Origin: Takakia lepidozioides | Taxonomy: Eukaryota; Plantae; Bryophyta | Assembly: GCA_030704615.1 (NCBI GenBank) | Contig: CM060731.1 | Coordinates: 64,976,001-65,040,000, forward strand | Reading direction: 5' to 3' | DNA: 64,000 bases | In this document: positions 25,845-62,452 of the stretch, piece by piece | Numbering within the stretch: position 1 is the stretch's first letter | How the letters are laid out: each line of letters begins with the position of its first letter | The notes under the pieces: model-generated | Database searches by the model: none | Told to the model about the DNA's origin: nothing | The model's input: only the letters and a program-made list of their open reading frames with translations | Program-made: the position numbers and the translations under genes

Positions 25845-27359
25845 AGCTGCTAAGGAGCTCGCACGCTAGGAAGTGCAGCTTGTGCTTGTGTGCGTTTGGA
25901 TAGACTGTCGCATCCTGGCCTCTCGCACCGTGGAACAGAATATCCCTTGTGGATAGAATATCCATGTTATGGATCCACACAGGCTGGGCGACAATAGCAG
26001 AGTTTAGTCCAGCGAGGGCATTGACGTGGTCACTTGCTTGAATGCATACAGTCTGACTTGTATGCATTCAAGCAAGACATCTTTTTGAAAACGTTCGCGA
26101 TTTTGTATGGAACTCCTGTGTCGAGACGGCCAAGAACTCCCGTGACTTCACATTCACACTATCCCATCATCACCCGGTGACGTTTCAGCTTGGTACTCTG
26201 TTTTGGAGTTGCAAAACAGAGTACCCTGTTGGAGCCATCATGGTGAATAAAGGATCGCAAATGAGGGGCCTGTTCTCTCTTGAAGGAGGACAGAACTTAT
26301 TGTTGTCATCTTCAAGAAGGAGATCCTATTTTACACGACGTTACCGCTATTCCCTTTCTGGTTCTTCCTACACTTGCCAGAGTAGATTTGTGGCGAAGTG
26401 GTCTCAGGTCTTTCTGTCTCTCTCTTTGAAGATGCACAGTTGGAAGATACGTTGCTTTCTTGGTGGCCTCTGCTCTGACATGTTTTGGTAGTATCATTTT
26501 CAGCTTACTGACTGAATACATTTGTGAAGAAACTGTATGGTCGAACTGGGTTTATGGTTTGCACTGCGCAGAAGTTAAACTTGAATCAGGGGGAATGGGG
26601 TGAGGTTGAGTGGCATGAGCTTGCAGTATCTAAAGGTGTACCTCATCATGAGTGTCGCGGCCACATACTTAGAGCAGCTCAATGTGCTTGCAGCAGCAGC
26701 CTACATGGACCCTGCCACATATTACGACGTGCATGCCCCCCGTCCCTGCCATCCTGCACGACTAGAATCTCTGAGTTGCAAACCATTACACGTCAAATGC
26801 ATTCAGTACTTCAATCCGGTCATCATATGACTGCTAGATTCAAGCAATGTCTGTGACGTTACGTTGCAGCTCAAGACGGAAGTCGTACACGTCCGCGGCA
26901 ACGGCCGCCGTTAAGGTCGTCCTAGTTCTTCACAACTCTCTGCCCGGAGCTCTCCCATGGCGCACGTAGGGGCGGTTCATGGAGTTGTGGCATTGCCATA
27001 TCCCGACTGCTGTTTTGCTGCAGCGGCCTATGCAAGATTGGAAGGTGCCTCTGCTGGGACCTTGGATTCGCTCAAATCGTCATCGCGTCGGTTGTCTGAT
27101 GGCACCGATCTTCTCGTTATGGGCTCTATCAGCAGGTTCACAGTTCTTGACCTCCCTTCCTACTGGACGTAAGTGCATGCCCACGTTGAGGGGGGTTGTA
27201 ACCTCCGGAGAACCTGAACACATGTACAGCTTATACACCAACACTGAATTGTGCCGATATGGGTTTCCCGATACCACTTGTGGGTAAGGCGAGAATGTAT
27301 TCATTTTTGTTGTGGGGACAGGGATAGCTGAAGGAGGTAGTGTTGGAGGGTGGGTGCAG

Positions 27360-29661
27360 ATCAATCCGAGCCAACCAAATTTCAGGAAGAAGAGTACCAA
27401 CGAGATACTGTGGATTGATAGCTACAAGAAACTGGCGTGGATAGGTGGTGAACTGGAACCAACAGTAGCACAGGTGTTTGAATCTGGCACCTCCACCATG
27501 ACTACTACTACTTTTGAAAGAAGACCAAAGGAGAGGGTCCACTCTAACTGTTCTCTCATTCCTGGGGATGTGAGGAGGCTCTCTAAGGCAGGACAACTGA
27601 AAAAGAAAGGCAATGCAACCAAGGGAGCATTTCGGTAGACTCCAATACTTATGTGTGTCTCTTGCAGGAGTGCGTCAAGATAAAAGGCTTAGCAGAGGGA
27701 AAGCAAGTGCATGCCCACATTATTGAAAGTGGAGTTAAGCCAAGCATTTTTGTATACAACAGCCTCGTTAACATGTATGCCAAGTGTGGGAGCGTGGTGG
27801 ATGCATGCCTATTGTTTGACAAAATGCCTGAACGAGATAGATTTACGTGGAACATAATGATGGCAGGATATGTCAAGCATGGGTGTGGTAGGGAGGCCTT
27901 GGAGATATATGAGGAAATGCTATGGGAAGGGGTGAGCCCCAACAATGTTACATTCACTTGTGTCCTCACAGCGTGCGGCAGCCTAGGAGCCCTGGAAAAG
28001 GGCAAAGAGGTCCATGCTGATATCATCAAAGCCGGAGCTGACCCAGATGTCATTCTGGAGACTGCCCTTGCTTCAATGTATGCCAAATGCGGGAGCATGC
28101 AGGATGTACGTCGAGTGTTTGACAGTATGGCTGAAAGAGATGTGGCCTCATGGAATGCGATGATTGCAGGATATGCTCAGCATGGGTGTGAGAGGGAGGC
28201 TTTCGAGATCTATCAGCAAATGATACGGGAAGAAGTCGGACGAGCTCACTTTCATTTGTGTGCTCCATGCTTGCCTTGGAGCCCTAGAAAAAGTCAAAGA
28301 GATTCATGCTGACATCATCAAAGCTGGAGTTGAGCCAAATATCAATCTGGAGAATACTCTTGTTGACATGTATGCCAAATGTGGGAGCATGAAGGATGCA
28401 CGTCAAGTTTTCGACAATATGTCTGAGCAAAATGTGGTCTCGTGGAGTGCAATGATTGGAGGATATGCTCAGCACGGCTGTGGTAGGGAGGCTTTGGAGA
28501 CCTATGAGCAAATGATGAGCGCCAGGGTGATTCCCAACCAGGTCACATATGTTTGCGTTCTTAATGCATGTGCCGTCCTGGCAGCCCTCGAAAAGGGAAA
28601 AGAGGTCTATGCTGACATCATCAAAGCTGCAATTGCGCCAGATATTATTCTCGAGAATGCCCTTGTCAACATGTACGCCAAATGCGGGAGCATTAAAGAT
28701 GCATTCCTAGTCTTCGACAATATGGCTCGACGTGATGTAGTGTCATGGAGTGCAATGATAGCAGGATATGCCCAGCACGGTTGTGGTAGGGAGTCCCTGC
28801 AACTATTTGAACAAATGCAACAGGTAGGCACTAAGCCAAATGGTATCACATTTCTCTGTGTTCTCTCTGTTTGTAGCCATGTGGGCCTAGTGGATGAAGG
28901 CTGTCACTACTTTGGTTCCATGAGTCAATATCATGGCATCACCCCTGCGGTGGAGCATTTTGGCTGCATGGGTGGACCTTCTTGGCCGTGCAGGGCAACT
29001 GGATGAGGCGGAGGACTTAATTAAGAAAATGCCAATGGAACCAGGTGCTGCGGTTTGGGGGGCCTTGCTTGGTGCTTGCGAAATTCATGGTGATGTGGTG
29101 CGAGGAGAATGGGCTGCAAAATGTCTTCTTAAATGGGATCCTCAACATGCCTATCCTTATGTGCTGCTATCGAATATATATGCTGCAGCTGGCAGGTGGG
29201 ATGATACAGTAAAAGTGAGAAGAATGATGAAGGACCGGGGTGTCAGAAAAGAGCCTGGTCACTGCTGCATTGAGGTCAACAAACAGGTGCGTATATTTCT
29301 TGTAGATGACAAATTGCATCCACAAATCAAGGAAATCCATGCTCAGCTGGAGAGATTATCTGGGCAGATGAAGGAGGCTGGGTATGTGCCTGACACGCGC
29401 TTTGCATTGCGTGATGTGGAGGAGGAGCAAAAGGAATTTTCTCTTTGTCACCATAGTGAAAAGCTGGCCATTGCTTTTGGGCTGATCAGCACTTCCCCTG
29501 GGATGCGTCTTCTTGTCATCAAGAACCTTCGGGTTTGTGGTGACTGCCATACGGCCACCAAGTTCATCTCAAAGATTGTTGAGCGAGAAATCATAGTACG
29601 GGATACCAATCGTTTTCACCACTTCAAAGATGGGCTTTGTTCTTGTGGGGATTACTGGTGA
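27360..29661 (+). pseudogene. PLS-PPR-E-DYW gene with a half PDF motif at its 5' end; three frameshifts (locus 1)
   Basis: After an acceptor at 27358-59 it reads INPSQPNFRKKSTNEILWIDSYKKLAWIGGEL (diverged PDF half), then the same linker as loci 2/3, PLS repeats, E1/E2 and PGHCCIEV...HSEKLA...CGDCH...DYW. Frameshifts at ~27605, ~28235 and ~28970 split it across four ORFs. Confidence 0.85.
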
Positions 29662-32009: not shown

Positions 32010-32435
32010 ACTAGGGTAGCATGTGCCGTTGGCCCAAGCGTCTAGGGTCATGTAAGCCCAAGTGCAATCTCCTATGCATTCAAGTGCATCTCCTATGTCT
32101 AGGCCCAAGTATGACCTCCAGGGTAGCCTATGCCGTTGGCCCAAGTGTCCAATGTCATCTAAGTCCAAGTGCATCAATATATGAAGGAAGCCATATCTAA
32201 TCATTTTTTTCCACAGAGCCTACGATCAGATTGAACCAGAGACCCTTGATATCTCTCCTGTCGAGGCTCCAACCATTGTCCCAGGAATGCCCACTTTGCT
32301 ATTTTTCGTGAATCTCCAACGACCAAAAGTACTTGGAATTCCACATCTCCCACACCATAGGTCCAAAAATTATGAGACCAAGCCCGTGCACCCCTCCTCG
32401 TCGAGGGCTTTCCAATGGTACCAAGCACCAGGGCT
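32010..32435. repeat. Composite repeat, copy A (ccaagtgcaatctcctatg minisatellite plus a ~180-bp unit)
   Basis: Direct-repeat homology to 34370-34965, including shared blocks ctcctgtcgaggctcc, actttgctatttttcg and gagggctttccaa(t/c)ggtaccaagcacc. Confidence 0.75.
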
Positions 32436-34369: not shown

Positions 34370-34965
34370 TACCTACCAAGTGCAATTTCCTATGTATCCC
34401 AATGCGTCTCCTATGTCGAGGCCCAAGTGCGACCTCTAGTGTAGCCTATGCCGTTGGCCCCTCTATGAATAATTGAAATCTAAGTCCATGTGCAAAATTT
34501 TCCTACATATCCAAGTGCGTCTCCTATGTGAAGGCCCATCTAAGCCTAAGTGCAATCTTTTATTTATGTATCCAAGTGCATCTCCCATGTAGAGGCCCAA
34601 GTGTCCAGTGTCATGTAACTTGCCCAAGTGCAATCTCCTATGTATCCAAGTGCATCTCCCATGTAGAAACCCAAGTGTCCAGTGTCATGTAACTTGCCCA
34701 AGTGCAATCTCCTATGTATCCAAGTACGTCTCCCATGCCCAATTTTTTTTATATTAATTTATTGAGTAGTAATATATCCATTTATTATTGATATATCTCC
34801 TGTCGAGGCTCCCAAGAAAGCCTACTTTGCTATTTTTCGAGAATTTCCAGCGACCCAAAGTACTCTAAATTTCACATCTCCAACACTGCAGGTCCAAAAA
34901 TAATGAGACCAAGCCGGTGCACCCCTCCTCATCGAGGGCTTTCCAACGGTACCAAGCACCGGACC
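34370..34965. repeat. Composite repeat, copy B (~75-bp minisatellite array plus a ~180-bp unit)
   Basis: Tandem units like cccaagtgcaatctcctatgtatccaagtgcatctcccatgtaga...cccaagtgtccagtgtcatgtaacttg at 34545-34740, followed by the unit also seen at 32250-32435. Confidence 0.75.
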
Positions 34966-35558
34966 CTGCGGTCTGGGAGACCTCAACGACGCTACCAAAC
35001 AAACAAACAAACGCCTCCCTTCATATATTGATAACATATTGTACATACATATTGAACTTTATGTACAACAGCGAGCCTAGAGTGAGCGCATGAAGAGGGA
35101 GGCTCGGGTATATTTTGTGGAAGGGCCGGGGTTTGGGGGCAGGTGATACACCACAGTTGGGTGTGGCAATGGCTTACATGGCAGGTGGTCTGCACGGGAT
35201 GCAGCAGAGTTCAATATGACAGTGGTGTCTCTGAAAAATAAGAGTATATGGAAGGTGAGAAAAACTTAAATGCCAAGACCCAGGGTAAAAGAAAGCCTCT
35301 GGGCTGCTCAACGCCTCCCTCCCTGATCGTTTTCAGAGACCACTCTACAATCCCCAGACTGCAAACATAAGCTGCGTTAGCATCTGTGTAAGTCTGGACA
35401 TGTTCGTTGTTCCTCATCGTGTAGAGCCCAATGGAGCCCAAAACAACTTGCATGAATGTTGCTGAAAGCTCACTAGCACCCCTCAGTAAAGGACTTTGTC
35501 AAAATGTTGATGCTGTCGGATTTTCGAGCACAAACGTCTACCTTGGAGCACGGAGCAG

Positions 35559-37690
35559 AGCTGGCATGAGTTTTTTAAAGATCCTTCACGATGGTGGGAC
35601 AACCGCAATCGCAAGGTGTGGCTTTCTCTTAATGTATGATGTGAAGAAGTTTGTCCATCCTGCAGATGTGGGCTCTTGGCTCTTCCTGTTAGTACCATGA
35701 TTTTGTATTCTTCCTGATGTTTACAAGGTTCTTGGGAGAGTCAGCATGGTCTTAGCAGGCCGTGTTTCAATCTATGCCTGCTCAGCTGCACCGTGGTGGT
35801 TCTCACAGACCAATCCGACATGACCTGACTACAGACACAAAACACAAGAGGTCCTTTTGGGTTGATGTTCGGTCAATTCCTCCATGGGTCATGACACAAG
35901 GTCAAGGACAATGTGGTGAGGGCACCTTCTTCTTAACCCAAATCAGCCTGTTTTGCGCTCTTGTCAGACTAGGCCCTGAATTTGCATATTGAATTCTGTA
36001 AGTTGGCTCGTTGGGGGGATCTCTGGTGGTTTGGAGTGACTTTGACAAGTTACTGCCGATGTGGCAGCAGGAAAGTACCCAAAAACAGATAACAGAGATG
36101 AGGAGAAGCACTTTTCCGACCCCAGTCAATGGTGGGACAATGGAGACAAAAAGGTGAATGCCTGTTGGATTACAGAGAGAAGCAGATGCAATTCGGAATT
36201 GGAACTACTGTAATAAGTAGGGTTGGGGTGTTTGCTGGAAGAACTTCACGCCGTCAGTGTCAGCTGCTAGCAGCAGGGCTGAGGATGTATTCATGATTTG
36301 TACACAGGCAGGGATAGCTGAAGGACCAGGGATAGAGGTCCAGATTCATGCAAGAGGGCCAGATTTCAAACACAAGATTACTTCTGATTCCCTGTGGATC
36401 AATAGCTACAAGAAACCTGCGTGGGTAGATGGTCACCTGGAAACAGCAGCGGCAGCAGCACAATTGATAGAACCAGGCACAGGCACCTTCTTCAACACAT
36501 TTCAGCCTGTTTCTCTCTGTTATCAGAGTCGTCCCTAAATTTTGAGGTTGAATTCTGCAAGTTAGCTCGTTGGTGGATCTATGGTGGTTTGGAGTGATTT
36601 TGAAATGTTACTGCCAATGTGGCAACAGGAAAGTATCGAAAAACAGATAACAGAGACGAGGAGAAGCTCTGGAATGAATATGTTTCCGACCACAGTCAAG
36701 GGTGGAACAATCGAGGCAAAAAGGTGAATGCCTGTTGGAAGCGCAAGTCAGCATAGGAACTAGTGTGATAAGTAGGGTTGGGGTGTTTGCTAGAACAAAT
36801 CTAGGCTGTCATTGTCAGCTGCTAGCAGCAAGGCAAGGATGTATGCATGATTTGTGCAGAGCATGGATAGCTGAAGGAGCAGGGGTAGAGTTTGGGTCCA
36901 GATTCATCCAAGAGGGCCAGATTTCAAGCTCAACATTACCTATGATTCCCTGTGGACGGATAGCTACAAGAAACCTGCATGGGTAGATGGTCTACTGGAA
37001 GCCGCAGCAGCAGCGGCACAATTGACAAAATCAGGCACTGCTAATGAAGGCACCTTCTTCAACACATTTCACCCTGTTTTTCCCTCTTATCAGAATAGGC
37101 CCTAAAATTCCATGTTGAATTCTGCAAGTTAGCTGGTTGAGTGAATCTTTGATAGTTTGGAGTGACTTCGACATGATACTGCCAATGTGACAACAGGAAA
37201 GTATCCAGAAACAGGTAACACAGGCGAGGAGAAGCTGTGGAATGAATACTTTTCTGACCCCAGTCAATGGTGGGACAACCGAGGCAAAAAGGTGAATGCC
37301 TGTTAGATTACAGAGAGTAGCAGACGGAACTAGTGTGATAAGCTGAGTTGGGTGTTTCCTAGAACAAATCTAGGCTGTCATTATCAGCTGCCAGGCAAGG
37401 ATGTATGCATGATTTGTGCAGAGGCAGTGATAGCTGAAGGAGCAGGGATAGGAGTGTGATAAGTTGAGTTGGGTGTTTCCTAGAACAAATCTAGGCTGTC
37501 GTTGTCAGCTGCTAGCAGCAAGGCAAGGATGTACGCATTATTTGTACAGAGGCAGTGATAGCTGAAGGAGCAGGGATGGAGTGTGTGTCCAGATTCATTC
37601 AAGAGGGCCAGATTTCAAACACAAGATTACCTATGATTCCCTGTGGATCAATAGCTACAAGAAACCTGCATGGGTAGATGGTCAACTAAA
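35559..37690 (+). repeat. Tandem array of two-exon units (~550 bp) each encoding one OSB-type PDF motif (one degenerate plus three intact)
   Basis: Exon Y (GKYPETGNTGEEKLWNEYFSDPSQWWDNRGKK) / GT-AG intron / exon X (IHPRGPDFKHKITYDSLWINSYKKPAWVDGQL...) / putative GC-AG intron, repeated with homologous introns. Confidence 0.88.
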
Positions 37691-40600
37691 GGAAGCTGCT
37701 GCAGCGGCACAGTTGATAAAATCAGGCACCTCAACCATCACCACAGCTTCTGAAAGAGGATCAAGAGAGGGAGTCCACAATGCCTCTTCTGGCACTTCTG
37801 GGCATGTGAAGATGCTTTGTGAGGCAGGCAGACTGAAAGAGGCTCTACTGACTTTAAACCAAGGAGGCATTTCAGCAGATTCAGAGACGTATGTCTGTCT
37901 CTTACTTAAGTGCATCAAGATGAAAGGTCTGGAAGCTGGAAAGCAGGTGCACACTCACATTGTCCAAAGTGGATTCACGCCAAATGTTTTTCTACTCAAC
38001 ACCCTTGTCAACATGTATGTTAAGTGCGGGAGCATCATGGATGCTCACCAAGTGTTCAACAGAATGCCTCAACGATCTTTGATCACGTGGAATATAATGT
38101 TGGCAGGATTTACCAAGCATGGGTGTGGTAGGAATGCTTTGGAGACCTATGAGCAAATGCTTCACGAAGGGGTGAAGCCCAACCACATTACATTTGTTTG
38201 TGTTTGCAATGCTTGTGCAAGCCTGGGAGCTCTGGAAAAGGGGAAAAAGGTCCATGGTGACATCGTCAAAGCTGGAATTGTACCAGATGTCATTCTGAAA
38301 ACTGCCCTGGTGGACATGTATGCCAAATGTGGGTGCATTAAGGATGCGAAGGGAGTTTTCAACACTATGGCTGAACGAGATGTGGTGTCATGGAACGCGA
38401 TGCTTGCAGGGTATGCACAGCAGGGACGTGGGATGGAGGCTTTGGAGACCTATGATCAAATGATGGGGGAAGGGGTGAAGCCCGACCACATCACGTTTGT
38501 GTGCATTTGCAATGCATGTGCAAGCCTGGCAGCTCTGGAAAAGGGCAAAGAGGTCCATGGTGACATTGTCAAAGCTGGAATTGTACCCAATGTCATTCTG
38601 AACTCTGCCCTGGTGGACATGTATGCCAAATGTGGGTCCATCGAGGATGCAAAGGCAGTGTTTGATACGATGGCTGAGCGAGATGTGGTGTCATGGAACG
38701 CGATGATCGCAGGGTATGCCCAGCAGGGTCACGGGATGGAGGCTTTGGATACCTACGAGCAAATGATGGACGAAGGGATGAAACCCGACCACATCACGTT
38801 TGTTGGCGTTTGCAATGCCTGTGCAAGCCTGGGAGCCCTGGGAAAGGGCAAAGAGATCCATGGTGACATCATCAAAGCTGGAATTGTACCAGATGTCATC
38901 CTGAACACTGCCCTGGTGGACATGTATGCCAAATGTGGGAGTATTGAGGATGCGAAAGGAGTATTCAACACTATGGCTGAACGAGATGTGGTGTCGTGGA
39001 CCGCGATGCTTGCAGGGTATGCACAGCAGGGGCGCGGGATGGAGGCTTTGGAGACGTATGAGCAAATGATGGGTGAAGGGGTGAAGCCCAACCACATCAT
39101 GTTTGTGTGCGTTTGCAGTGCGTGTGCAAGCCTAGCAGCCCTGGAAAAGGGCAAGGAGGTGCATGGTTGCATCGCCAAAGCTGGAATTGTACCAGATGTG
39201 ATTTTGAACAATACCCTCGTGGACATGTATGCTAAATGTGGGTCCATCGTGGATGCAAAGGCAGTGTTTGATAAGATGGCTGAGCGAAATGTGGTGTCAT
39301 GGAATGTGATGATCGCAGGATATGCCCAGCTGGGTCACGGGATGGAGGCTTTGGATACCTATGAGCAAATGATGGGTGAAGGTGTGGAACCCGACCACAT
39401 CACATTTGTTGGCGTTTGCAATGCGTGTGCGAGCCTGGCAGCTCTGGAAAAGGCCAAAGAGGTCCATGGTGACATCGTCAAAGCTGGAATTGTACCAAAT
39501 GTCGTTCTGAACAATACCCTCGTGGACATGTATGCCAAATGTGGGTGCATCGAGGATGCAAAGGGAGTGTTTGACAATATGGCTGAACGGGATGTGGTGT
39601 CATGGAGTGCAATGATTGCAGGATATGCACAACAAGGGCGTGGGATGGAGGCTTTGGAGACGTATGAGCAAATGATATGGGAAGGGGTGAAGCCCAACCA
39701 CATCACGTTTGTTTGCGTTTGCAATGCATGTGCAAGCCTGGCAGCCTTGGAAAAGGGCAAAGAGGTCCATGGTGATCTTGTCAAAGCTGGACTTGTACCA
39801 GATGTCATTCTGAACACTGCCCTGATGGACATGTATGCCAAATGTGGGTCCATCGAGGATGCAAAGGCAGTGTTTGATAAGATGGCTGAACGAGATGTGG
39901 TGTCATGGAACGCGATGATCGCAGGATATGCCCAGCAGGGTCACGGGATGGAGGCTTTGGATACCTATGAGCAAATGATGGGCGAAGGGGTGAAACCCGA
40001 TCACATCACGTTTGTTGGCGTTTGCAATGCGTGTGCGAGCCTGGCAGCTCTGGAAAAGGCCAAAGAAGTCCATGGAAAAATCGACAAAGCTGGAGTTGTA
40101 CCAGATGTCATTCTGAACAATACCCTTGTGGACATGTATGCCAAATGCGGGTGCATCGAGGCTGCAAAGCGAGTGTTTGACAATATGGCTGAACGAGATG
40201 TGGTGTCGTGGAACGTGATGATAGCAGGATATGCCCAGCATGGTTGTCATAGGGAGGCCCTGCAACTATTGGAAGGAATGCAAAAGAAAGGCTTGAAGCC
40301 GGACAGTATCACCTTTATATGTGTTCTCTCTGTATGCAGCCACACTGGCCTACTGGATGAAGGAAGACGCTACTTTGATTCCCTGAGTCATGTTCATGGT
40401 GTCACTCCGACAGTAAAGCACTTTGGGTGCATGGTGGACCTTCTTGGACGTGCGGGGCAATTGGATGAGGCAATGGACCTGATTAATAAAATGCCAATCA
40501 ATCCAGATGTTGTGGTATGGAAGGCCTTGCTTGGTGCCTGCAGAATCCATGGCAATGTGGAGATGGCTGAACGTGCGGCAACATCTATTCTCCAGTGGAA

Positions 40601-41123
40601 TGAACAGGATGCCGAGACGTATGTGTTGCTATCAAACATCTATGCTGCAGCTGGCAGGTGGGATGATACTGCAACGGTGAGAAGAATGATGAAGGTCAGA
40701 GGGGTTAGAAAGGAGCCAGGTCGCTGCTGCATTGAGGTTGGCAACAGGGTGCACACCTTCGTTGTAGATGACAAATTGCATCCCAAAATTAAGGAAATCC
40801 ATGCTGAGCTGAGAAGATTGTCTGGGCAGATGAAGGAAGCGGGGTATGTGCCTGACACGCGCTTTGTATTGCATGATGTGGGGGAGGAGGAAAAGGAATT
40901 TTCTCTTTGCCACCACAGTGAGAAGCTGGCCATTGGTTTTGGGCTGATCAGCACAACCCTTAGGACGCCTCTCCGTCTCATCAAGAATCTTCGAGTGTGT
41001 GGTGACTGCCACACCTCCACCAAATTCATCTCAAAGATTGTTGGCCGAGCAATTGTTGTACGGGACGCTAACCGCTTTCACCACTTTGAAGATGGGATTT
41101 GTTCTTGTGGGGATTACTGGTGA
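35891..41123 (+). CDS. PDF-motif x3 - PLS-PPR (26 motifs) - E1-E2-DYW protein (locus 2); model join(35891..35921,36071..36153,36344..36482,36629..36723,36902..37049,37197..37291,37593..41123), ~1373 aa
   Basis: The final exon is an uninterrupted ORF with L,S + 7 P-L-S triplets + P2-L2-S2, a PG box (KEPGRCCIEV), the HSEKLA...CGDCH zinc deaminase signature and a terminal DYW. All upstream exon phases are compatible. The PPR-DYW part is certain; the 5' exons and start codon are inferred. Confidence 0.85.
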
Positions 41124-44758: not shown

Positions 44759-47700
44759 TCACCAGTAATCCCCACAAGAACAAATCCCATCTTCAAAGTG
44801 GTGAAAGCGGTTAGCGTCGCGTACAACAATTGCTCGGCCAACAATCTTTGAGATGAATTTGGTGGAGGTGTGGCAGTCACCACACACTCGAAGATTCTTG
44901 ATGAGACGGAGAGGCGTCCTCGGGGTCGTGCTGATCAGCCCAAAACCAATGGCCAGCTTCTCACTGTGGTGGCAAAGAGAAAATTCCTTTTCCTCCTCCC
45001 CCACATCATGCAATACAAAGCGCGTGTCAGGCACATACCCCGCTTCCTTCATCTGCCCAGACAATCTTCTCAGCTCAGCATGGATTTCCTTAATTCTGGG
45101 ATGCAACTTGTCATCTACAACGAAGGTGTGCACCCTGTTGCCAACCTCAATGCAGCAGCGACCTGGCTCCTTTCTAACCCCTCTGACCTTCATCATTCTT
45201 CTCACCTTTGCAGTATCATCCCACCTGCCAGCTGCAGCATAGATGTTTGATAGCAACACATAAGTAGTGGCATCCTGTTCATCCCACTTGAGGATAGATG
45301 TTGCCGCACGTTCAGCCATCTCCACATTGCCATGGATTCTGCAGGCACCAAGCAAGGCCTTCCACACCACAACATCTGGATTCATTGGCATTTTATTAAT
45401 CAAGTCCACTGCCTCATCCAGTTGTCCCGCACGTCCAAGAAGGTCCACCATACAGCCAAAGTGCTTTACTGTCGGAGTGACACCATGATCTTGACTCAGG
45501 GAATCAAAGTAGCGTCTTCCTTCATTCAGTAGGCCAGTGTGGCTGCATGCAGAGAGAACACATATAAAGGTGATACTGTCCGGCTTCAAGCCGTTCTTTT
45601 GCATTCCTTCAAATAGTTGCAGGACCTCCCTATGACAACCATGCTGGGCATATCCTGCGATCATCGCGTTCCACGACACCACATTTCGTTCAGCCATCTT
45701 GTCAAACACTCCCTTTGCATCCTCGATGGACCCACATTTGGCATACATGTCCACTAGGGTATTGTTCAGAATCACATCTGGTACAATTCCAGCTTTCGCA
45801 ATGCAACCATGCACCTCTTTGCCCTTTTCCAGGGCTGCCAGGCTTGCACAAGCATTGCAAACGCACACAAACGTGATGCGGTTGCACTTCACCCCTTCCC
45901 CCATCATTTGCTCATAGGTCTCCAAGGCCTCCATCCCGCGCCCCTGCTGTGCATACCCTGCAAGCATCGCGGTCCACGACACCACATCTCGTTCAGCCAT
46001 AGTGTTGAACACTCCTTTCGCATCCTCAACGCTCCCACATTTGGCATACATGTCCACCAGGGCAGTGTTCAGGATGACATCTGGTACAATTCCAGATTTG
46101 ATGATGTCACCATGCACCTCTTTGCCCTTTTCCAGGGCTGCCAGGCTTGCACAAGCATTGCAAACGCACACAAACGTGATGCGGTTGCACTTCACCCCTT
46201 CCCCCATCATTTGCTCATAGGTCTCCAAAGCCTCCATCCCGCGCCCCTGCTGTGCATACCCTGCAATCATCGCGCTCCATGACACCACATCTCGTTCAGC
46301 CATAGTGTTGAACACTCCTTTCGCATCCTCAATGCTCCCACATTTGGCATACATGTCCACCAGGGCAGAGTTCAGAATGACATTGGGTACAATTCCAGCT
46401 GTGACAATGTCACCATGGACCTCTTTGCCCTTTCCCAGAGCTGTCAGGCTCGCACATGCATTGCAAATGCACACGAACGTGATGTGGTTGGGCTTCACCC
46501 CTTCCCCCATCATTTGATCATAGATCTCCAAAGCCTCCATCCCACGTCCCTGCTGTGCATACCCTGCAAGCATCGCGTTCCACGACACCACATCTCGTTC
46601 AGTCATAGTGTTGAAAACTCCCTTCGCATCCTTAATACACCCACATTTGGCATACATGTCCACCAGGGCAGTGTTCAGAATGACATTGGGTACAATTCCA
46701 GCTTTGACGATGTCACCATGGACCTTTTTCCCCTTTTCCAGGGCTCCCAGGCTTGCACACGCATTGCAAACACAAACAAATGTGATGTGGTTGGGCTTCA
46801 CCCCTTCGCGCAGCATTTGCTCATAGGCCTCCAAAGCATTCCTTCCACACCCATGCTTGGTAAATCCTGCCAACAATATATTCCACGTGATCAAAGATCG
46901 TTGAGGCATTCTGTTGAACACTTGGTGAGCATCCATGATGCTCCCGCACTTAACATACATGTTGACAAGGGTGTTGAGTAGAAAAACATTTGGCGTGAAT
47001 CCACTTTGGATAATGTGAGTGTGCACCTGCTTTCCAGCTTCCAGACCTTTCATCTTGATGCACTTGAGCAAGAGACAGACATACGTATCTGAATCTGCTG
47101 AAATGCCTTCTTGGTTTAAAGTCTGTAGAGCCTCTTTCAGTCTGCCTGCCTCACAAAGCATCTTAACATGCCCAGAAGTGCCAGAAGAGGCATTGTGGAC
47201 TCCCTCTCTTGATCCTCTTTCAGAAGCTGTGGTCATGGTTGAGGTACCTGATTTTATCAACTGTGCCGCTGCAGCAGCTGCCTTTAGTTGACCATCTACC
47301 CATGCAGGTTTCTTGTAGCTATTGATCCACAGGGAATCGTAGGTAATCTTGTGCTTGAAATCTGGCCCTCTTGGATGAATCTGGACCCACACTCTATCCC
47401 TGCTCCTTCAGCTATCACTGCCTCTGCACAAATCATGCATACATCCTTGCCTTGCTGCTAGCAGCTGACAATGACAGACTAGACTTGTTCGAGGAAACAC
47501 CCAACTCAACTTATCACACTAGTTCCTATACTCAATTGCATCTGCTACTCTTTGTAATCCAACAGGCATTCACCTTTTTGCCTCGATTGTCCCACCATTG
47601 ACTGGGGTCAAAAAAGTATTCATTCCACAGCTTCTCCTCGTCTGTGTTGCCTGTTTCTGGATACCTTCCTGTTGTCACATTGGCAGTATCATGTCAAAGT

Positions 47701-49518
47701 CACTCCAAACTATCAAAGATTCACTCAACCAGCTAACTTGCAGAATTCAACATGAAAATTTAGGGCCGATTCTGATAAGAGGGAAAAACAGGGTGAAACG
47801 TGTTGAAGAAGGTGCCTTCATTAGCAGTGCCTGATTTTGTCAATTGTGCCGCTGCTGCTGTGGCTTCCAGTTGACCATCTACCCATGCAGGTTTCTTGCA
47901 GCTACTGATCCACAGGGAGTCATAGGTAATCTTGTGCTTGAAATCTGGCCCTCTTGGATGAATCTGGACCCACCCTCCTATCCCTGCTCCTTCAGCTATC
48001 ACTGCCTCTGCACAAATTATGCATAGATCCTTGCCTGGCAGCTGATAATGACAGCCTAGATTTGTTCTAGGAAACACCCAACTCAGCTTATCACACTAGT
48101 TCCGTCTGCTACTCTCTGTAATCTAACAGGCATTCACCTTTTTGCCTCGGTTGTCCCACCGTTGACTGGGGTCAGAAAAGTATTCATTCCACAGCTTCTC
48201 CTCATCTTTGTTACGTGTTTTTGGATACTTTCCTGTTGTCACATTGGCAGTATCAGGTCGAAGTCACTCCAAACTAGATTCACTCAACCAGATAACTTGC
48301 AGAATTCAACATGGAAATTTAGGGCCGATTCTGATAAGTGGGAAAAACAGGGTGAAATGTGTTGAAGAAGGTGCCTTCATTAGCAGTGCCTGATTTTATC
48401 AAATGTGCCACTGCTGCTGCGGCTTCCAGTTGACCATCTACCCATGCAGGTTTCTTGTAGCTATCCGTCCACAGGGAATCGTATGTAATCTTGAGCTTGA
48501 AATCCAGCCCTCTTGGATGTATCTGGACCCAAACTCTATCCCTGCTCCTTCAGCTATCCATGCTCTGCACAAATCATGCATACATCCTTGCCTTGCTGCT
48601 AGCAGCTGACAATGACAGCCTAGATTTGCTCTAGCAAACAAACCAACCCTACTTATCACACTAGTTCCTCTGCTGGCTTCTCACCTTTTTGCCTCGATTG
48701 TTCCACCCTTGACTGCGGTCGGAAACATATTCATTCCAGAGCTTCTCCTCGTCTCTGTTATCTGTTTTTCGATACTTTCCTGTTGTCACATTGACAGTAA
48801 CATGTCAACATCACTCCAAAACCACCATAGATCCACCAACGAGCTAACTTGCAGAATTCAACCTGAAAATTTAGGGACGACTCTGATAGCAGCGAAAAAT
48901 ACGCTAAAATGTCTTGAAGAAGTAGCAGTGCCTGGTTCTATCAATTGTGCTGCTGCCGCTGCTATTTCTACCCACACAGGTTTCTTGTAGCTATTGATCC
49001 ACAGGGAATCAGAAGTAATCTTGTGTTTGAAATCCGGCCCTCTTGCATGAATCTGGACCTCTATCCCTGGTCCTTCAGCTATCCCTGCCTGTGTACAAAT
49101 CATGAATACATCCTCAGCCCTGCTGCTAGCAGCTGACACTGACGGCGTGAAGTTCTTCCAGCAAACACCCCAACCCTACTTATTACAGTAGTTCCAATTC
49201 TGAATTGCATCTGCTTCTCTCTGTAATCCAGCAGGCATTCACCTTTTTGTCTCCATTGTCCCACCACTGACTGGGGTTGGAAAAGTGTTCATTCCAAAGC
49301 TTCTCCTCATCTCTGTTATCTGTTTTTGGATACTTTCCTGCTGCCACATCGGCAGTAACTTGTCAAAGTCACTCCAAACCACCACAGATCCCCCATACGG
49401 GCCAACTTACAGAATTCAGTGTGCAAATTCAGGGCCGAGTCTGATAAGAGGGCAAAACAGGCTGAAATAGGTCGAAGAAGAAGGTGCCCTCACCACATTG
49501 TCCTTGAACCTGTGTCAT
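44759..49518 (-). CDS. PDF-motif x4 - PLS-PPR (17 motifs) - E1-E2-DYW protein (locus 3); exons 49518-49488, 49337-49243, 49052-~48932, 48779-48685, 48522-48375, 48232-48138, 47963-47816, 47668-47574, 47380-44759
   Basis: The final exon is an uninterrupted ORF with L,S + 4 PLS triplets + P2-L2-S2, E1/E2 and an intact DYW (HSE, CxxC). Upstream 95-nt and 148-nt exons are in phase. The usual donor of the third exon is deleted (~48925), so the 5' part is uncertain. Confidence 0.82.
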
Positions 49519-50178
49519 GACCCATGGAGGAATTGACCGACCATCAACCCAAAAGGACCTCTTGTGTTTTGAGTCTGTAGTCAGGTCATGTCGGATTGGT
49601 CTGTGAGAACCACCACGGTGCAGCTGAGCAGGTATAGATTGAAACACGGCCTGCTAAGACCAAGCTGACTCTCCCAAGAACCTTGTAAACATCAGGAAGA
49701 ATACAAAATCATGGTACTAACAGGAAGAGCCAAGAGCCCACATCTGCAGGATGGACAAACTTCTTCACATCATACATTAAGAGAAAGCCACACCTTGCGA
49801 TTGCGGTTGTCCCACCATCGTGAAGGATCTTTAAAAAACTCATGCCAGCTCTGCTCCGTGCTCCAAGGTAGACGTTTGTGCTCGGAAATCCGACAGCATC
49901 AACATTTTGACAAAGTCCTTGACTGAGGGGTGCTAGTGAGCTTTCAGCAACATTCATGCAAGTTGTTTTGGGCTCCATTGGGCTCTACACGATGAGGTAC
50001 AACGAACATGTCCAGACTTACACAGATGCTAACGCAGCTTATGTTTGCAGTCTGGAGATTGTAGAGTGGTCGCTGACAACGATCAGGGAGGGGAGGCACT
50101 GAGCAGCCCAGAGTCTTTCTTTTACCCTGGGTCCTGGCAATGAGTCTTTTACCCTGGACCAGCGTTGGGCGGGTATTA

Positions 50179-54338: not shown

Positions 54339-57300
54339 CCTGGGGGGTGCACTCTTTATAAAATGTCCGTATCACGTGCGTTCGCCGCCTAATAGAAAAA
54401 CCCCTTGTATACGGGTCCTTGGATCATTTATACCCCCTCTGTACATACATTTTGAAGATTATAAAACCCCCTCCTGTAAATATATAGAAATTTGTAAATT
54501 TTAAAAAGTACCCCCTTATGTATGTATATTTCCCTTTTCAATAATTCAAAAATACCCTCAAATATGTATATGTATATTTTTATATTATATCAAGTTTATT
54601 TATTTAAAAATAGAATAAAATCTAGTAAATTAATTAAAAAAATGTTTCCCTCAATAAAACTTGCTGTGGAATCTCACTTTGAACAATAATCAGATGCAGA
54701 GAGGAAAAGGACATTGTCAATGCCCGATGTGCAAGAGGCATGAAGAAAGTTTCCATTTTCTGATATACAGTCCTGGGTATTTTCATCAGAGAGTGACCCT
54801 CTTGAAGACCATCAAGACCTAGTCACTGCACCTTTGTTCATCAACTAGGACAGTTTCTGGACTTGTTCTACAGTTTTAACCTTCGCAAGGTCCAATTATT
54901 TTCAAAACCTACTGTTGAGAATTCCTCTCCAAAAAGAGATTTCGTGCGCCTTTGCTGCCACTGTTGGAGTCCAACCTGACTCGCAGCTGACAGAGTTCAA
55001 TACATTCAATTAGGTGACAAACATTTCATTTCACCAATACTCCCCACAAGAACAAACACCATTTTGGAAGTGGTGAAAGCGGTTTGCATCCCGTACAACA
55101 ATCTCTTGCTTAGCTATCTTTGAGATGAATTTGGTGGCTGTGTGGCAATCACCACACATCTGAAGATTCTTGATGATCCCCAAAGACATCCCAGAGGGTG
55201 TGTTGATAAGCCCAAAAACAATGGCCAGCTTCTCATTGTGTTGGCAAAGAGACGATTCTTTAAGCTCTTCCTCAACATCATGCAATGCAAAGCACAGGCT
55301 TCACCCCTTCGCACATCATTTGCTCATAGGTCTCCAAAGCCTCCATCCAGCGCCCTTGCTGTGCATATCCTGCAATCATCGCACTCCATGACAGCACATC
55401 TCGTTCAGCCATACCGTCGAACACTCCCTTCATACATGTCCACGAGGGTATTGTTCATAATCACATTTGATACAATTGCAGATGTGACAATGTCACCATG
55501 GACCTCTTTGCCCTTTTCCAGAGCTAACAGGCTTGCACACGCATTGCAAATGTACACAAACGTGATGTGGTCGGGCTTCACCCCTTCCCCCATCATTTGA
55601 TCATAGGTCTCCAAAGCCTCCATATCACGTCCCTGCTGTGCATACCCTGCAAGCATCGCACTCCACGACACCACATCTCGTTCAGCCATGGAAACTCCCT
55701 TTGCATCTTTAATGCACCCACATTTGGCATACATGTCCATCAGGGGAGTGTTCAGAATGACATCTGGTACAATTCCAGCTTTGACAAAGTCACCATGGAC
55801 CTCTTTCCCCTTTTCCAGAGCTCCCAGGCTTGCACACGCATTGCATCCTGCCAACATTATATTCCACGTGATCAAAGATTGTTGAGGCATTCTGTTGAAC
55901 ACTTGGTGAGCATCCATGATGCTCCCACACATAACATATATGTTGACAAGGGTGTTGAGTAGAAAAACATTTGGCGTGAATCCACTTTGGATGATGTGAG
56001 TATGCACCTATTTTCCAGCTTCCAGACCTTCCATCTTGATGCACTTAAGCAAGAGACAGACATACATATCTGAATCTGGTGAAATGCCTTGTGATGTGGT
56101 TAGGCTTCACCCCGTCCCCCATCATTTGCTCATAGGTCTCCAAAGCCTCCATCCCGTGCCCCTGTTGTGCATACCCTGCAAGCATCACGTTCCACGACAC
56201 CACATCTCGTTCAGCCAAAGTGTTGAAAACTCCCCTCACATCCTTAACGCACCCACATTTGGCAAACATGTCCACAAGGGTAGTTTCAAGATGACATCTG
56301 GTACAATTCCAGCTTGCTCCCAGGCTTTCACACGCATTGCAAACACAAACAAATGTGGTTGGGCTTCACCGCTTTGCACATCATTTGCTCATATGTCTCC
56401 AAAATGTTCCTACCACACCTATGCTTGGTAAATCCTTTCAACATAATATTCCACGTGATCAAAGATCATTGAGGCATTTTGTTGAACACTTGGTGAGCAT
56501 CCCTGATGTTCCGGCACTTAACATACAGGTTGACAAGGGTGTTGAGTAGAAAAACATTTGGCGTGAATCCACTTTGGATAATGTGAGGGTGCACCTGCTT
56601 GCCAGCTTCGAGACCTTCCATCTTGATGCACTTAAGCAAGAGACAGACATACATATCTGAATCTGCTGAACTGCCTCTTTGTTTTAGAGTCTGTAGAGCC
56701 TCTGTCAGGCTGTCGCACAAAGTATCTTCACATGCCCAGAAGTGCCAGAGGAGGCATTGTGGACTCCCTCTCTTGATTCTCTTTCAGAAGCTGTGGTCAT
56801 GGTTGAGGTGCCTGATTTTATCAATTGTGTCGCTGCAGCTGCTGCCTTTAGTTGACCATCTACTTTCTTGTAGCTATTGATCCGCAAGGAATCAGAAGTA
56901 ATCTTGTGTTTAAAATCGACCTCTTGGATGAATCGTGTTCCACAACACCACCTCGTTCAGCCATAGTGTTGAACACTCCCTCCGCATCCTCAGTGCTCCC
57001 ACAATGGCATACATGTCCACAAGGGTATTGTTCATAATCACATCCGGTACAATTCCAGCTTTGGTGATGCAACCATGCACCTCTTTGCCCTTTTCCAGGG
57101 CTACAGGCTTGCACACGCACTGCAAACGCACACAAACATGATGTGGTCGAGCTTCACCCCTTCCCCCATCATCTGCTTTCAGGTCTCCAAAGCCCCATCT
57201 CGCGCTCCTGCTCTGCACACCCTGCAAGCATCGCGTTCCACGACACGACATCTCATTCACCCATAGTGTTGAACACTCCCTTGGCATCCTCAATGCTCCC

Positions 57301-60080
57301 ACATTTGGCATACATGGCCACCATAGCAATGTTCAGGATGACATCTAGTACAATTGCAGATTTGATGATGTCACCAGGGATCTCTTTGCCCTTTTCCAGG
57401 GCTGCCATACGCACTGCAAACGCACACAAACGTTATGTCGGCGGCCTTCACCCCTTCCCCCATCATTTGCTCAAAGGTTGGAGCCTCCATCCCGCACCCC
57501 TGTTGTGCATACCCTGCAAGCATTGCACTCCACGACACCACATCTCGTCCAGCCATAGAGTTGAACACTGATCCCTTGGCATCCTCGATGCACCCACATT
57601 TGGCATACATGTCCACCAGGGTAGGGGCAGTGTTCATAATGACATCTGGTAATCTGATAGGCATTCACCTTTTTGCCTCGGTTGTCCCACCATTGTCTGG
57701 GGTCAGAAAAATATTCATTCCACAGCTTCTCCTTGTCTCTGTTACCTGTTTCTAGATACTTTCCTGTTGTCACATTGGCAGTATCATGTCAAAGTCATTC
57801 CAAACTACCCTAGATTCACTCAACCAATTAACTTGCAGAATTCAACATGAAAGTTTAGGGCCGATTCTGATAGGAAGAGACAACAGGGTGGAATGTGTTG
57901 AAGAAGGTGCCTTCATCAGCAGTGCCTGATTTTATCAATTGTGTTGCTGCTGCTACGACTTCAAGTTGATTATCTACCCATACAGGTTTCTTATATCTAT
58001 CCTTCCACAGGGAATCATCGGTAATCTGGAGCTTGAAATCTGGAGCTTGTCCTTGACCTTGTGTCATGACCCGTGGAGGATTTGACCGACCATCAACCCA
58101 AAAGGACCTCTTGTGTGTGCTGCTTGTGTCTTGTAGTCATACTTCCCCTAAACAATCCAACCCAGGCTATGACAATGACCAAAATACCAAGCCCAACCTG
58201 ATGGCAAACCTCCCTCATTCAAAGCCTGATTTTCTGGCGAGTGTGACCACATGCAACATTGTCAAATCCTAGAGAGCCTACTTGTAGAAGTCATGTGAAC
58301 GAGCATTCATGCAGAAAAAAAGTTTATGAAGAGTCTACGGATGTGACGGACTCAGTGCTCTTTCTGCGCTTTAAGTGCAGGGGCGACAACAAGGTCGGCC
58401 ATGCCATAATACTCCCAAGACTGTCGACCTGCCTGACCAGCTGTTCGTTGTCATTGCCTTCCTTCTCCACTCCACGGACCAGCGCATCCAAGGGTAAATT
58501 CAGTGTCTTCTGCACATGTGGTACATGTACAACACAATCGGAACTCGTACTCTCGAATATAAGGCAAACCAGTAGACCTGACTCTGTACACAATTGTCCG
58601 ATTTGCAGACATTGCTTCCATATTGCCCTAGAGTGCACGGTGAATAATAGATTGCTTAGGCGTCAAGATGCTTATTCTAGGTATATGTACAGGTCATGAA
58701 TGTGAGAATAACAAGAAATTCATGAAGTTAGACTTACAGCCAGCCAATCACCAATGGCGCGCGATTCTGGAGGTCTTCCAGCTTTCTTGTTTACCTGCAA
58801 ATTGAAAAGCACATGGAAGAAAAGGTCAGGTGTTTAACTAAGAGGAATTCTCTGGTGTTTATCGGAGAAGGAGAGAGCACCTGTTGAAGAGCAGCTTTGA
58901 ACATGGTGCTGCTATTGGGGTTCCATGTAATGCCGTCAGATACCTGGGAGGTGCTTGCCAGTGGCTGGGAAGTTGCTCCTTCGCTCTTGACTGTGGTCAG
59001 CGTCTGAAGCAAGGCTGGAAATGGAGGCTTGGCATTTGTGCTGATGGTTTGGCTGGGAGCTGGCAAGTTGAGCATGTTCAAGAACACAGAGACAAAGATC
59101 AGAAAGCAAGGAAATCAGATTCTTAGTCTGAATTCTATACCTCAAAGACTCCTAACTTGGATGTGACCACACATATTGATCCAGTATCCTGCTCCTGTAC
59201 ATAGGTCTGCAATTCTAGACAGACGATTGCAAGTCGGATTGGTCTGTGAGAACCACCACGGTGCAGCTGAGCAGGTAGAGATTGAAACACGGCCTGCTAA
59301 GACCAAGCTGACTCTCCCAAGAACCTTGTAAACATTAGGAAGAATACCAAATCAGGGTACTAACAGGAGGCAAGAGCCTGCATTTGCAGGATGGACAAAC
59401 TTCTTTACATCGTACCTTAAGAAAACGCCACACTTTGCGATTGCAGTTGTCCCACAAACGTGAAGGATATGCTCCGTGCTGCAAATTCAGGGCCGAGTCT
59501 GATGAGAGGGCAAAACAGGCTGAAATAGGTCGAAGAAGAAGGTTCCCTCACCACGTTGTCCTTGACATTGTGTCATGACCCATGGAGGATTTGACCTCCC
59601 ATCAGCCCAAAAGGACCTCTCTTCTGTGTGCTGCTGGTGTCTGTAGTCAAGTAATGTCAGATTGGTCTTTGAGAACCACCACGGTGCAGCTGAGCAGGCA
59701 AAGATTGAAACGACCTGCTAAGACCAAGCTGACTCTCCCAAGAACGCGGGAGAGGAGGGGAGAGGAGAGGCGAGGAGAGGAGGGGAGGAAAAAGAGAGCC
59801 CACGGTAGGGAAGGGGAGAAAGATCGCGGGGAGAAAAAAAGGAAAAAAAACAAACAAAAAGAATGATCCCGTGATTTAATCCCGCGGTGTATCACGACCC
59901 AAATAACGTCCTTACCACTAGACTACCCTTTAAAACTTAACAACCCCCTCCTGTAATATTATATTTAAGGTGTTTTAAACCCCCCCATGTATGTATAATG
60001 CTGTACATGGGGGGGTTTAAAATACCCCCTCCTGTGCACGCACGTGGCTGGTACATACTGGCTGGAGTGCACCCCCCAGG
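54339..60080. mobile_element. Non-autonomous TIR DNA transposon (Pack-type), 5742 bp, carrying host gene fragments
   Basis: Perfect 16-bp TIRs CCTGGGGGGTGCACTC (54339-54354) and GAGTGCACCCCCCAGG (60065-60080). TSD AAGACGAC at 54331-54338 and 60081-60088. Subterminal ACCCCC(T)CCTGTA-like repeats occur at both ends. No transposase seen. Confidence 0.9.
55031..59744 (-). pseudogene. Scrambled PDF-PPR-DYW pseudogene (locus 4) inside the DNA transposon
   Basis: Out-of-order, frameshifted pieces: PDF exons and introns (57650-58140, 59232-59744), linker/first PPRs present twice (~56090-55860, ~56930-56340), PLS fragments, and a truncated DYW ending CSCGEYW (55031-55290). Confidence 0.9.
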
Positions 60081-60088
60081 AAGACGAC

Positions 60089-62452
60089 TATCATTGGGAC
60101 AAAGAACTCCTAGCTTTGAATCACTGTTTGGAAGACAAACACCAACACCATTCCAGCCAGCAGCAGCGGGACCATCCCAGTTTGGGCAACCAGTTGCACC
60201 AGTTGCACCGATGGCTTTAGCAGCAAACAAAACCAGATCACCATTTCATTTATATGATGGGAAATCTGATCCAGATATCCATCTTAATCAATTTGAAAAC
60301 ATGTGCACCATTTACAATGAAGCAACAGACCAAGAGAAGATCCGACTATTTCCTTGTTCAATGGCCCGGAAAGGCATTGAATGGTTGGCAACCTTCCCAG
60401 CCAATCACTTTGCGAATTGGGCGGATATGAGAGCCGCGTTTCAAGAAAGATATAGATCCAACAAATCCACGTCTGAAATCTTCACATGATTACAGATTCT
60501 GAGACAGAAAAAGAAAGAATTGGTAGTCGACTACCTGGAGAGAATGAAGACTCTGATCAGGAAGCTACCTCAAGCACTAGGGGATGATTTGCAAAAATCA
60601 TGGTTCATCAATGGACTTCATCCTGAATACGTAACCATGGTTACAGTCATGCCTAACAACACTTTGGCTGAAGCAGTAGGGACTGCAAAGAAGTTGGAAT
60701 TGGGATTCCATCAGAGCAGATGCAAAGATTCCAAGGATCCCTTGGAAGAAGAAGACTCTGATGATGAAGAAAAGCCCAAGCAAAAGAAGAAAGAAGTGAT
60801 TGACAAAACCACTTAATTTGGATCAGAAGATAGCAGAGGCTATGAAGAATTTTAAAGATGAAGGGCCACAAAAGGCAACATGGTGTCACAAATGCGGGAC
60901 TGCAGGACACCTGGCAACGGAATGCCATATGAAGGACAAATACTGTGATATTTGTCATATGAACAATCATAATACCAGCCATTGTATTTACAACCAACGG
61001 GCCAAGAAGACTGGGTACACACGAGAGGTGGGGGTACACCAAGTTCAAATCCGACGGGGAGGATCGGACGAACCAAGACGATACAATATGGGTAATCGTT
61101 ATCAGAGGCCACGAGATGAATATCCACCAAGGGATAGGGAACATCAACCCAGAAACAAAGAAAGCACGAGATGCCACAATTGCAAGAAAGAAGGGCACTG
61201 GAAACATGAATGCCAGTTGCGAATCAAGCATGAGGCAGAAGTGGGAAATATGGAAGCCGGACCAAGTGTAGTCGTAAGTGTGGTAACCTCTGTAGTGGAT
61301 ACCCTTGCGGTAACCCGAACTCAGGCCGAGAAACAGAAACCTCCAGATAAGGAGATCAAAGAAGAACGGAAACAATATCCAGAAAGTGCAGCATGGCAGG
61401 AGGAAAAGAGCTTACACCAGGAGGTAAGTAAAGCCATAGCTCAAATGCAAGAGGGGACTCATATACCTTCTGGAGAGCCAACTCCAGATAAGCAAATCAG
61501 ACCAACGATGAAGACCACGAATACAACCACGGAAACAGAATTGGCCGAAGTAATCTGCCAGACCAAGACCCAAATTACCATTGGACAATTATTAAAAATT
61601 GCTCCACACTGCAAAAAAACTTTGTTCCGGGCAATCGAGGCATTGACCCCCACACCAAAACAAAAACCAACACCAGAAGTTTACACGATTAAACCCACAA
61701 CTATACGACAAACTCTCGATTACGACGAAACAATACCCGTAATACAAGTACGTATTGGACGGAAGATGGTAACGGATGTACTCATCGATGGAAGATCCAG
61801 AGTGAATATCATGACAGAAAATATGAAAAAGTCACTAGGATTGGGGCACATGGAACCCGCTCCATTCACAGTACGAATGGCTGATCAACGAAAAGTGCAG
61901 CCATTGGGGATCATCAGACGACTTGCAATAGAAGTAGCAGGACTGGTATACGAAGTATCAGTAACCATTCTCAGAATGGAGGATGTGGCAGAAGGATATT
62001 CGCTACTACTTGGCCGACCATGGTTAACACAAGCCCAATCACACCACGATTGGGGAAGTCAGACTCTCACAATAAAAAAGGGAGCAGAACAAAGCACCAT
62101 CACTACCAAGCAACGAAGTACTATTCCACGAGAGAAACGACCTTATATAGTGGAAGAGTATGATTGGTCCAGTGGACTGTCGGATGAAGAAGAAGCCACA
62201 GTATACGCAGCACATCCACAATTGGAACCTATTGGGCAACTAGTGGTCAAGCATACCACAACAGTAGGATGTCACATGGTGAACACCCAAGGAGAACCAA
62301 ATACTTCGAGAACGGAAGGTTCAGAGGAAGAAGCGATGGACACACCTCAACACCCTGCCCGTTCTATCAAGAAAGGGAAGAAGACATTCAAATCAGTGAA
62401 GTACCTACCACAATTGCAACCATCGGACAAGAAATTGCAGGATGGACAGTAA
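60089..62452 (+). pseudogene. gypsy gag-protease region (stops/frameshifts)
   Basis: YDGKSDPDIHLNQF...LFPCSMARKGIEWL retrotransposon gag, zinc knuckles, and protease-like LLLGRPWL. Confidence 0.88.

Follow-up and report, generated by a model that had tools for sequence, protein, structure and literature searches.

An OSB-type PDF module on a PLS-class PPR-DYW gene of the moss Takakia lepidozioides

Pentatricopeptide repeat (PPR) proteins of the PLS class that end in a DYW:PG domain are C-to-U editors of organellar RNA, and these factors are generally believed to have hardly more than a transit peptide ahead of the repeat array. A gene in a 64-kb stretch of the Takakia lepidozioides genome (contig CM060731.1, positions 64,976,001 to 65,040,000; here called the window) has, ahead of such an array, copies of the PDF motif known from the organellar single-stranded DNA (ssDNA)-binding proteins, or OSBs. 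We asked what state this DNA-binding module is in, how it came to stand on a predicted RNA editor and what it may do there. By its testable sequence features, the gene classes as a PLS-DYW member and not as an OSB.

Anatomy of the gene and state of its PDF units

We scanned the six-frame translation of the window (106,347 residues) with a hidden Markov model (HMM) of the PDF motif, which was built from database proteins named OSB2 or OSB3 and their close relatives. Searches and HMM scans were run one exon at a time, and the joined model was assembled in scripts for a frame check. The check gave a gene of eight exons on the plus strand (35431-41123) that encodes 1460 amino acids and is open from the ATG at 35431 to the DYW stop. 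A preliminary description of the window had placed the finding at 35559-41123; that observation is borne out in part, since the open frame begins upstream of that span and a fourth, upstream PDF lies out of frame. An early reading of the gene as a 5'-truncated copy was dropped because compensating frameshifts give the open frame from 35431. A possible splice acceptor stands directly before this ATG and leaves room for one more exon.

The open reading frame (ORF) 37581-41123 (1180 amino acids) covers the PLS array, E, E+ and DYW, and its start, as first described, is half a PDF motif (the second half). Upstream of the PPR exon lie three direct repeats of ~560 nt, each consisting of an exon A and an exon B. 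Exon A has a phase-1 acceptor and a phase-0 GT donor and ends in KK/GT; exon B opens as AG/IH and runs on through PDFK; and the B-to-A introns have GC donors. When exons A and B of the repeat units are joined, the reading frame is kept.

Exons A and B are complementary halves of a single PDF motif, and the earlier assignment of that motif to the OSB type was borne out. The OSB-derived HMM matched the B exons of this gene over its positions 21-53, with E 1e-10 to 8e-8, and matched exon A3 over positions 2-24 (E 7e-7); scores were weaker for A1 (E=0.019) and A2 (E=0.16). We took the conserved positions from 80 natural PDFs, which were picked by high score and so somewhat overstate conservation, and found that only unit 3, next to the PPR array, keeps them all. 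In unit 1, a 12-nt in-frame deletion in A1 removes the conserved first W and LWNE helix residues, and the invariant R is lost (DNR>DNG); unit 2 is changed at conserved positions (P>H, W>G, D>N and H>L). The preliminary description had counted three in-frame copies under one consensus. Three units are present with the frame kept, as it said; units 1 and 2 are degenerate, and the quoted consensus describes unit 3 alone. The fourth, divergent PDF (PDF0, with halves A0 and B0) is interrupted by a stop and by frameshifts when read in its native frame; the gene frame crosses B0, regains the native frame near the end of that exon and has an in-frame ATG at 35891. An inverted paralogue in the window shares the lesions (stop and frameshift), which makes assembly error an unlikely cause of them. 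The array is one canonical PDF and two degenerate copies, plus one read out of frame.

When the N-terminal parts of four SSB and OSB proteins were searched against the window by tblastn, no match to an SSB/OB-like domain was found at E<=1, in agreement with the first inspection, and the gene is for this reason not classed as an OSB. The PLS array is followed by a PG-type DYW domain that is as intact as had been stated: the triplets end in P2-L2-S2, the code residues form canonical pairs in all 16 P and S repeats, and E, E+ and DYW are present with the zinc ligands, the catalytic Glu and the PG box. Among six near-identical triplets, the code positions P5 and S5 belong to the eight columns that vary most. 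The array is predicted to read ~26 nt, with the code n-C-Y-n-G-U-n-G-U-n-G-A-n-Y-U-n-U-A-n-G-U-n-U-U.

A natural PDF was modeled by AlphaFold as a confident small fold (pLDDT 94), and in a natural fusion, the PDF and the first PPRs folded as one confident model (pTM 0.80). In the ESM Atlas, the natural PDF fold matched PPR/DYW clusters and one SSB cluster at TM 0.85-0.94. The PDB gave no match by sequence, and by fold the best Z was 2.7, with none at E<=0.001. Pfam has no model for exon A or exon B, a homologue search with residues 4-50 of the ORF gave no match (too few shared words), a metagenome locus scan confirmed nothing, and all scores in an ESM Atlas feature search were <0.8.

We read the splicing from joints in contigs of two runs guessed to be RNA, which are mostly 90-95% alike to the locus. 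Joints fell at predicted sites with GT..AG introns, and one more, 37047>37195, is a GC-AG intron once its cut is shifted by two (Table 1). All four junction types of the gene were seen in these contigs, mostly from paralogues. The 37291/37593 junction, which the preliminary description had singled out for mapping, is not among the 15 joints listed (there are 206 further joints); a junction of the same type was seen. The records aligned to 3.5 kb numbered 6222 and 3433 in the two runs, mostly at 90-95%, which indicates a very large family and means that joints are not assignable to this copy. Splicing holds at the level of the family, and we infer that this copy is expressed and its product imported into organelles. 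In one contig, the donor of an exon A is linked directly to the acceptor of another (36151>37195); B is skipped, which would shift the frame.

Origin and relatives of the PDF-PPR fusion

A moss-type SSB-PDF gene (L005), probably Sphagnum host DNA, is interrupted at the same two places as the Takakia gene, by a phase-1 intron ahead of G-x-Y-P and a phase-0 intron following DNRGKK. Its DNA is 72-80% identical to the window exons, and 19 of 21 residues are identical in the exon A core. Both introns are present too in a PDF-PPR gene of Sphagnum compactum (L008); the Adiantum fusion is intronless. The occurrence of the same two introns in an SSB-PDF gene and a Sphagnum PDF-PPR gene indicates exon shuffling. 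When exons were scored one by one, A3 and B3 were best against the L005 SSB-PDF protein and A0 was best against fusion-type PDFs. With moderate confidence, we read these sequences as an old fusion that subsequently acquired a fresh cassette anew, or was converted by one, from a resident SSB-PDF gene; the cassette duplicated in tandem while the older PDF went out of frame. The one angiosperm OSB gene checked (L003) was rejected as the type of donor, having no intron in its PDFs.

A search with a B-exon profile gave 157 clusters, made up of OSBs, SSB-PDF proteins and PDF-PPR fusions, and the fusions came from Adiantum, Pteridium, Ceratopteris, Diphasiastrum and Sphagnum. Among the fetched proteins, which are a sample and not a census, 78 combine PDF and PPR. 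A DYW domain is found in 21 of them (almost all Diphasiastrum proteins, together with the moss-like metagenome gene P0309) and is missing from the other 57, some of which are fragments. In a tree of the E/DYW region, the window genes group with P0309 and Diphasiastrum P0239 (support 99/92), and the main Diphasiastrum expansion is a separate branch; the tree is midpoint-rooted and gives no order of events. PDF-PLS(-E-DYW) proteins are, to judge from these comparisons, an old, unnamed family of seed-free plants and not a one-off. The preliminary description knew of no such architecture, and we found no published description of PDF-PPR fusions in the literature searched, with subscription papers outside its coverage; a 2024 review lists none (PMC11897456). 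The architecture is, as the counts above show, not unique to this gene. What this locus adds is an apparently intact copy, the evidence from shared introns and the pattern of decay.

Other PDF proteins also came to light. In the Diphasiastrum protein P0204, which may be a fused gene model, a second PDF stands midway along the PPR array (residues 680-732), and tandem PDF proteins with 8-13 motifs occur without PPRs (P0002, P0006 and P0019; e.g., Kingdonia uniflora, 1160 aa). PDF motifs were found in metagenome proteins named single-strand DNA-binding protein (P0093 cluster, on contigs up to 469 kb) and PDF-like folds in hypothetical proteins of phages (TM 0.67-0.74); plants may not be the only source of this module.

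Function proposed for the fusion, and its rivals

The inverted paralogue is 94% identical to the gene and again has a canonical PDF only next to the PPRs. Between the two copies, the ratio of nonsynonymous to synonymous substitution rates (dN/dS) is 0.41 in the PDF exons (p 0.045), 0.32-0.34 in PPR/E and 0.10 in DYW. Exon indels between them are in frame only, introns diverge by 1-10%, and gene conversion may, on this pattern, contribute. The paralogue differs from the gene by three triplets and in its code residues, as expected of retargeted editing factors.

The reading that we favor, and to which we give about an even chance, is a site-specific organellar C-to-U RNA editing factor with the PDF as a sequence-independent single-strand tether. 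A tether to nucleoid ssDNA or R-loops had been raised in the preliminary description, and it is plausible. The PLS array would read its ~26-nt RNA target, and the DYW domain would deaminate a C downstream. The PDF beside the array would hold the editor at nucleoid ssDNA or transcription bubbles, or grip flanking single-stranded nucleic acid, and would thereby raise the local concentration of the editor. The module would have come from an SSB-PDF (OSB-type) gene as a cassette of two exons and then been duplicated in tandem, with the upstream copies degenerating. The PDF motif of AtOSB1 alone is sufficient to bind ssDNA (PMC6963530), and OSB1 limits R-loops (PMC8330923). A DNA-binding module kept in mosses, lycophytes and ferns, with no counterpart in the gymnosperm relatives retrieved, would link organellar RNA editing physically to the nucleoid, and co-transcriptional editing would be testable by deleting one 50-residue module. 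The fusion also offers a natural test of PPR-DYW action on ssDNA, and this small module without a solved fold could be tried on synthetic editors.

Several observations weigh against the tethered editor. None of the presumed-RNA reads is assignable to this copy. The N terminus resembles a transit peptide only weakly, with 3 acidic residues in the first 50 (judged by composition only), and part of the leader comes from a PDF read in a shifted frame. OSBs bind as tetramers (PMC6451138). No PDF was found in the sample of PLS proteins retrieved from Ginkgo, Cryptomeria and Taxus, so the PDF is not required for editing in general. The dN/dS values below 1 may be inherited or due to gene conversion (intron divergence is 1-10%).

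It is possible, if unlikely, that the gene is an ordinary editing factor whose PDF cassette is a passenger or a structural N-cap brought along by exon shuffling and by duplication in tandem. Conserved residues are missing from every one of the five upstream units of the two copies, PDF0 is out of frame, and the PDF half of a third gene in the window (27360..29661) is degenerate. Three gains or losses are required by the E/DYW tree, and the single predicted fold of PDF and first PPRs is one that capping would also give. On the other side, the proximal PDF is canonical in both copies, and the residues W, D, R, K, D, F and W, which are also those of the OSBs, do not vary across 50 fusions ranging from moss to ferns; dN/dS among PDF units is 0.25-0.29, from pairs that are not independent.

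Less likely still, in our view, is that the locus is a pseudogene of recent date, or that its product is truncated or mistargeted, and that the working members of the family lie elsewhere. The 5' homology between the copies ends at 35271, PDF0 is broken in its native frame, the GC donors are weak, two neighboring copies are decayed and no reads are locus specific. However, both copies are open from a common ATG, with two frameshifts that compensate; the 93 exon substitutions between them include zero stops (3.9 expected; P=0.019 under neutrality); and the code differs between copies through canonical pairs.

Very improbable, in our estimate, is a fast-turnover family outside housekeeping editing, engaged, for example, in the surveillance of foreign or selfish single-stranded nucleic acids in the organelle or cytosol. 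The thousands of contig records that align to 3.5 kb, the retargeting via triplet gain or loss and the unclear targeting peptide would fit such a role, as would the fact that the family expanded in Diphasiastrum even though predicted plastid editing is lowest, among lycophytes, in Lycopodiaceae (PMC9316050); DYW families are, however, known to expand with editing frequency, according to work cited in that paper. Slimmest of all is the chance of a sequence-programmed deaminase on organellar ssDNA (the displaced strand of an R-loop or replication intermediates), with PDF-directed organellar DNA editing or defence in seed-free plants. The preliminary description had raised a deaminase of ssDNA, and this analysis gave no positive evidence for one. 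The reading can appeal to the PDF as an ssDNA-binding module (PMC6963530), to the binding of ssDNA by designer P-type PPRs (PMC9508816) and to the DYW-like bacterial deaminase SsdA, which is reported to work as a DNA base editor (PMC11789416). Against it, the E/DYW region falls within the ordinary DYW proteins of plants, and the literature searched gave no account of a plant DYW with activity on DNA. DNA deamination would fix the site so that the gene was no longer needed, and the DYW domain is missing from many of the fusions retrieved (57/78, some of them fragments).

Neighboring features and comparison with known systems

The scrambled family copy (Table 1) is flanked by an imperfect 43-nt inverted repeat (72%; 54339-54381 and 60038-60080), with a 23-nt hairpin nearby (59969-60026), an arrangement compatible with capture by a Pack-type DNA transposon. 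Possible extra degenerate PDF second halves lie upstream of both plus-strand genes (35339-35430 and 25911-25958; E 1.0 and 7.8, not significant). Just 5' of the gene (32013-32429 and 34374-34960) are short tandem repeats of ~40-74 nt and a 151-nt duplicated element. The window also contains an LRR ORF (2556-3971) and retroelement ORFs with zinc-knuckle and reverse-transcriptase (60800-63462).

Table 1. Coordinates of the gene's exons and domains and of related copies in the window
Feature	Position	Strand	Remarks
Predicted exon 1	35431..35615	+	ATG 35431; 3' part is PDF0 half A (35553-35615) in shifted frame; joint 35613>35807, GT..AG
Exon B0	35809..35915	+	PDF0 half B; native frame with stop and frameshift; joint 35914>36628, GT..AG
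Exon A1 (PDF1 first half)	36071..36153	+	Donor used in joints 36151>36306 and 36151>36900, GT..AG
Exon B1 (PDF1 second half)	36344..36482	+	GC donor after 36476 or 36482, both in frame; alternative in-frame acceptor 36308
Exon A2 (PDF2 first half)	36629..36723	+	P>H, W>G, D>N at conserved positions
Exon B2 (PDF2 second half)	36902..37049	+	GC donor at 37050; joint 37047>37195
Exon A3 (PDF3 first half, canonical)	37197..37291	+	HMM match
Last exon, start	37593..37880	+	Canonical PDF3 second half, Ala/Ser/Thr/Gly-rich linker, pre-PPR helices
PLS array	37881..40520	+	L1-S1, seven P1-L1-S1 triplets, P2-L2-S2; canonical code residues
E, E+ with PG box, DYW deaminase	40521..41123	+	HSEKLA, CxxCH, terminal DYW
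Older family member, frameshifted	27360..29661	+	Degenerate PDF second half
Inverted paralogue	44759..49978	-	Ten exons, four PDF units (only the last canonical), three triplets fewer, 1236 aa open
Scrambled, decayed family copy	55030..59745	-	Flanked by imperfect 43-nt inverted repeat

The gene resembles PLS-class PPR-DYW (DYW:PG) editors such as Physcomitrium PPR56 in its P1L1S1 triplets, P2L2S2, E, E+ and PG box, in the HSEKLA/CxxCH zinc ligands and terminal DYW, and in its canonical code. Unlike these editors, it has one or more N-terminal PDF modules on a multi-exon leader without a clear transit peptide. The PDF motif is common to the gene, the OSB proteins (AtOSB1-4) and the bryophyte and algal SSB-PDF proteins, but the gene has no SSB/OB-like domain, and its PDF is N-terminal and followed by PPR-DYW. 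The same architecture, with 1-3 PDFs, is found in PDF-PLS(-E/-DYW) models from Sphagnum (CAM6051292.1), Diphasiastrum (O6H91 loci), Adiantum (KAI5076972.1), Ceratopteris and Pteridium, and these moss, lycophyte and fern models are annotated just as hypothetical or PPR proteins. PDFs 1-3 of the Takakia gene are closer to the SSB-PDF gene than to the other fusions, and its older PDF is out of frame.

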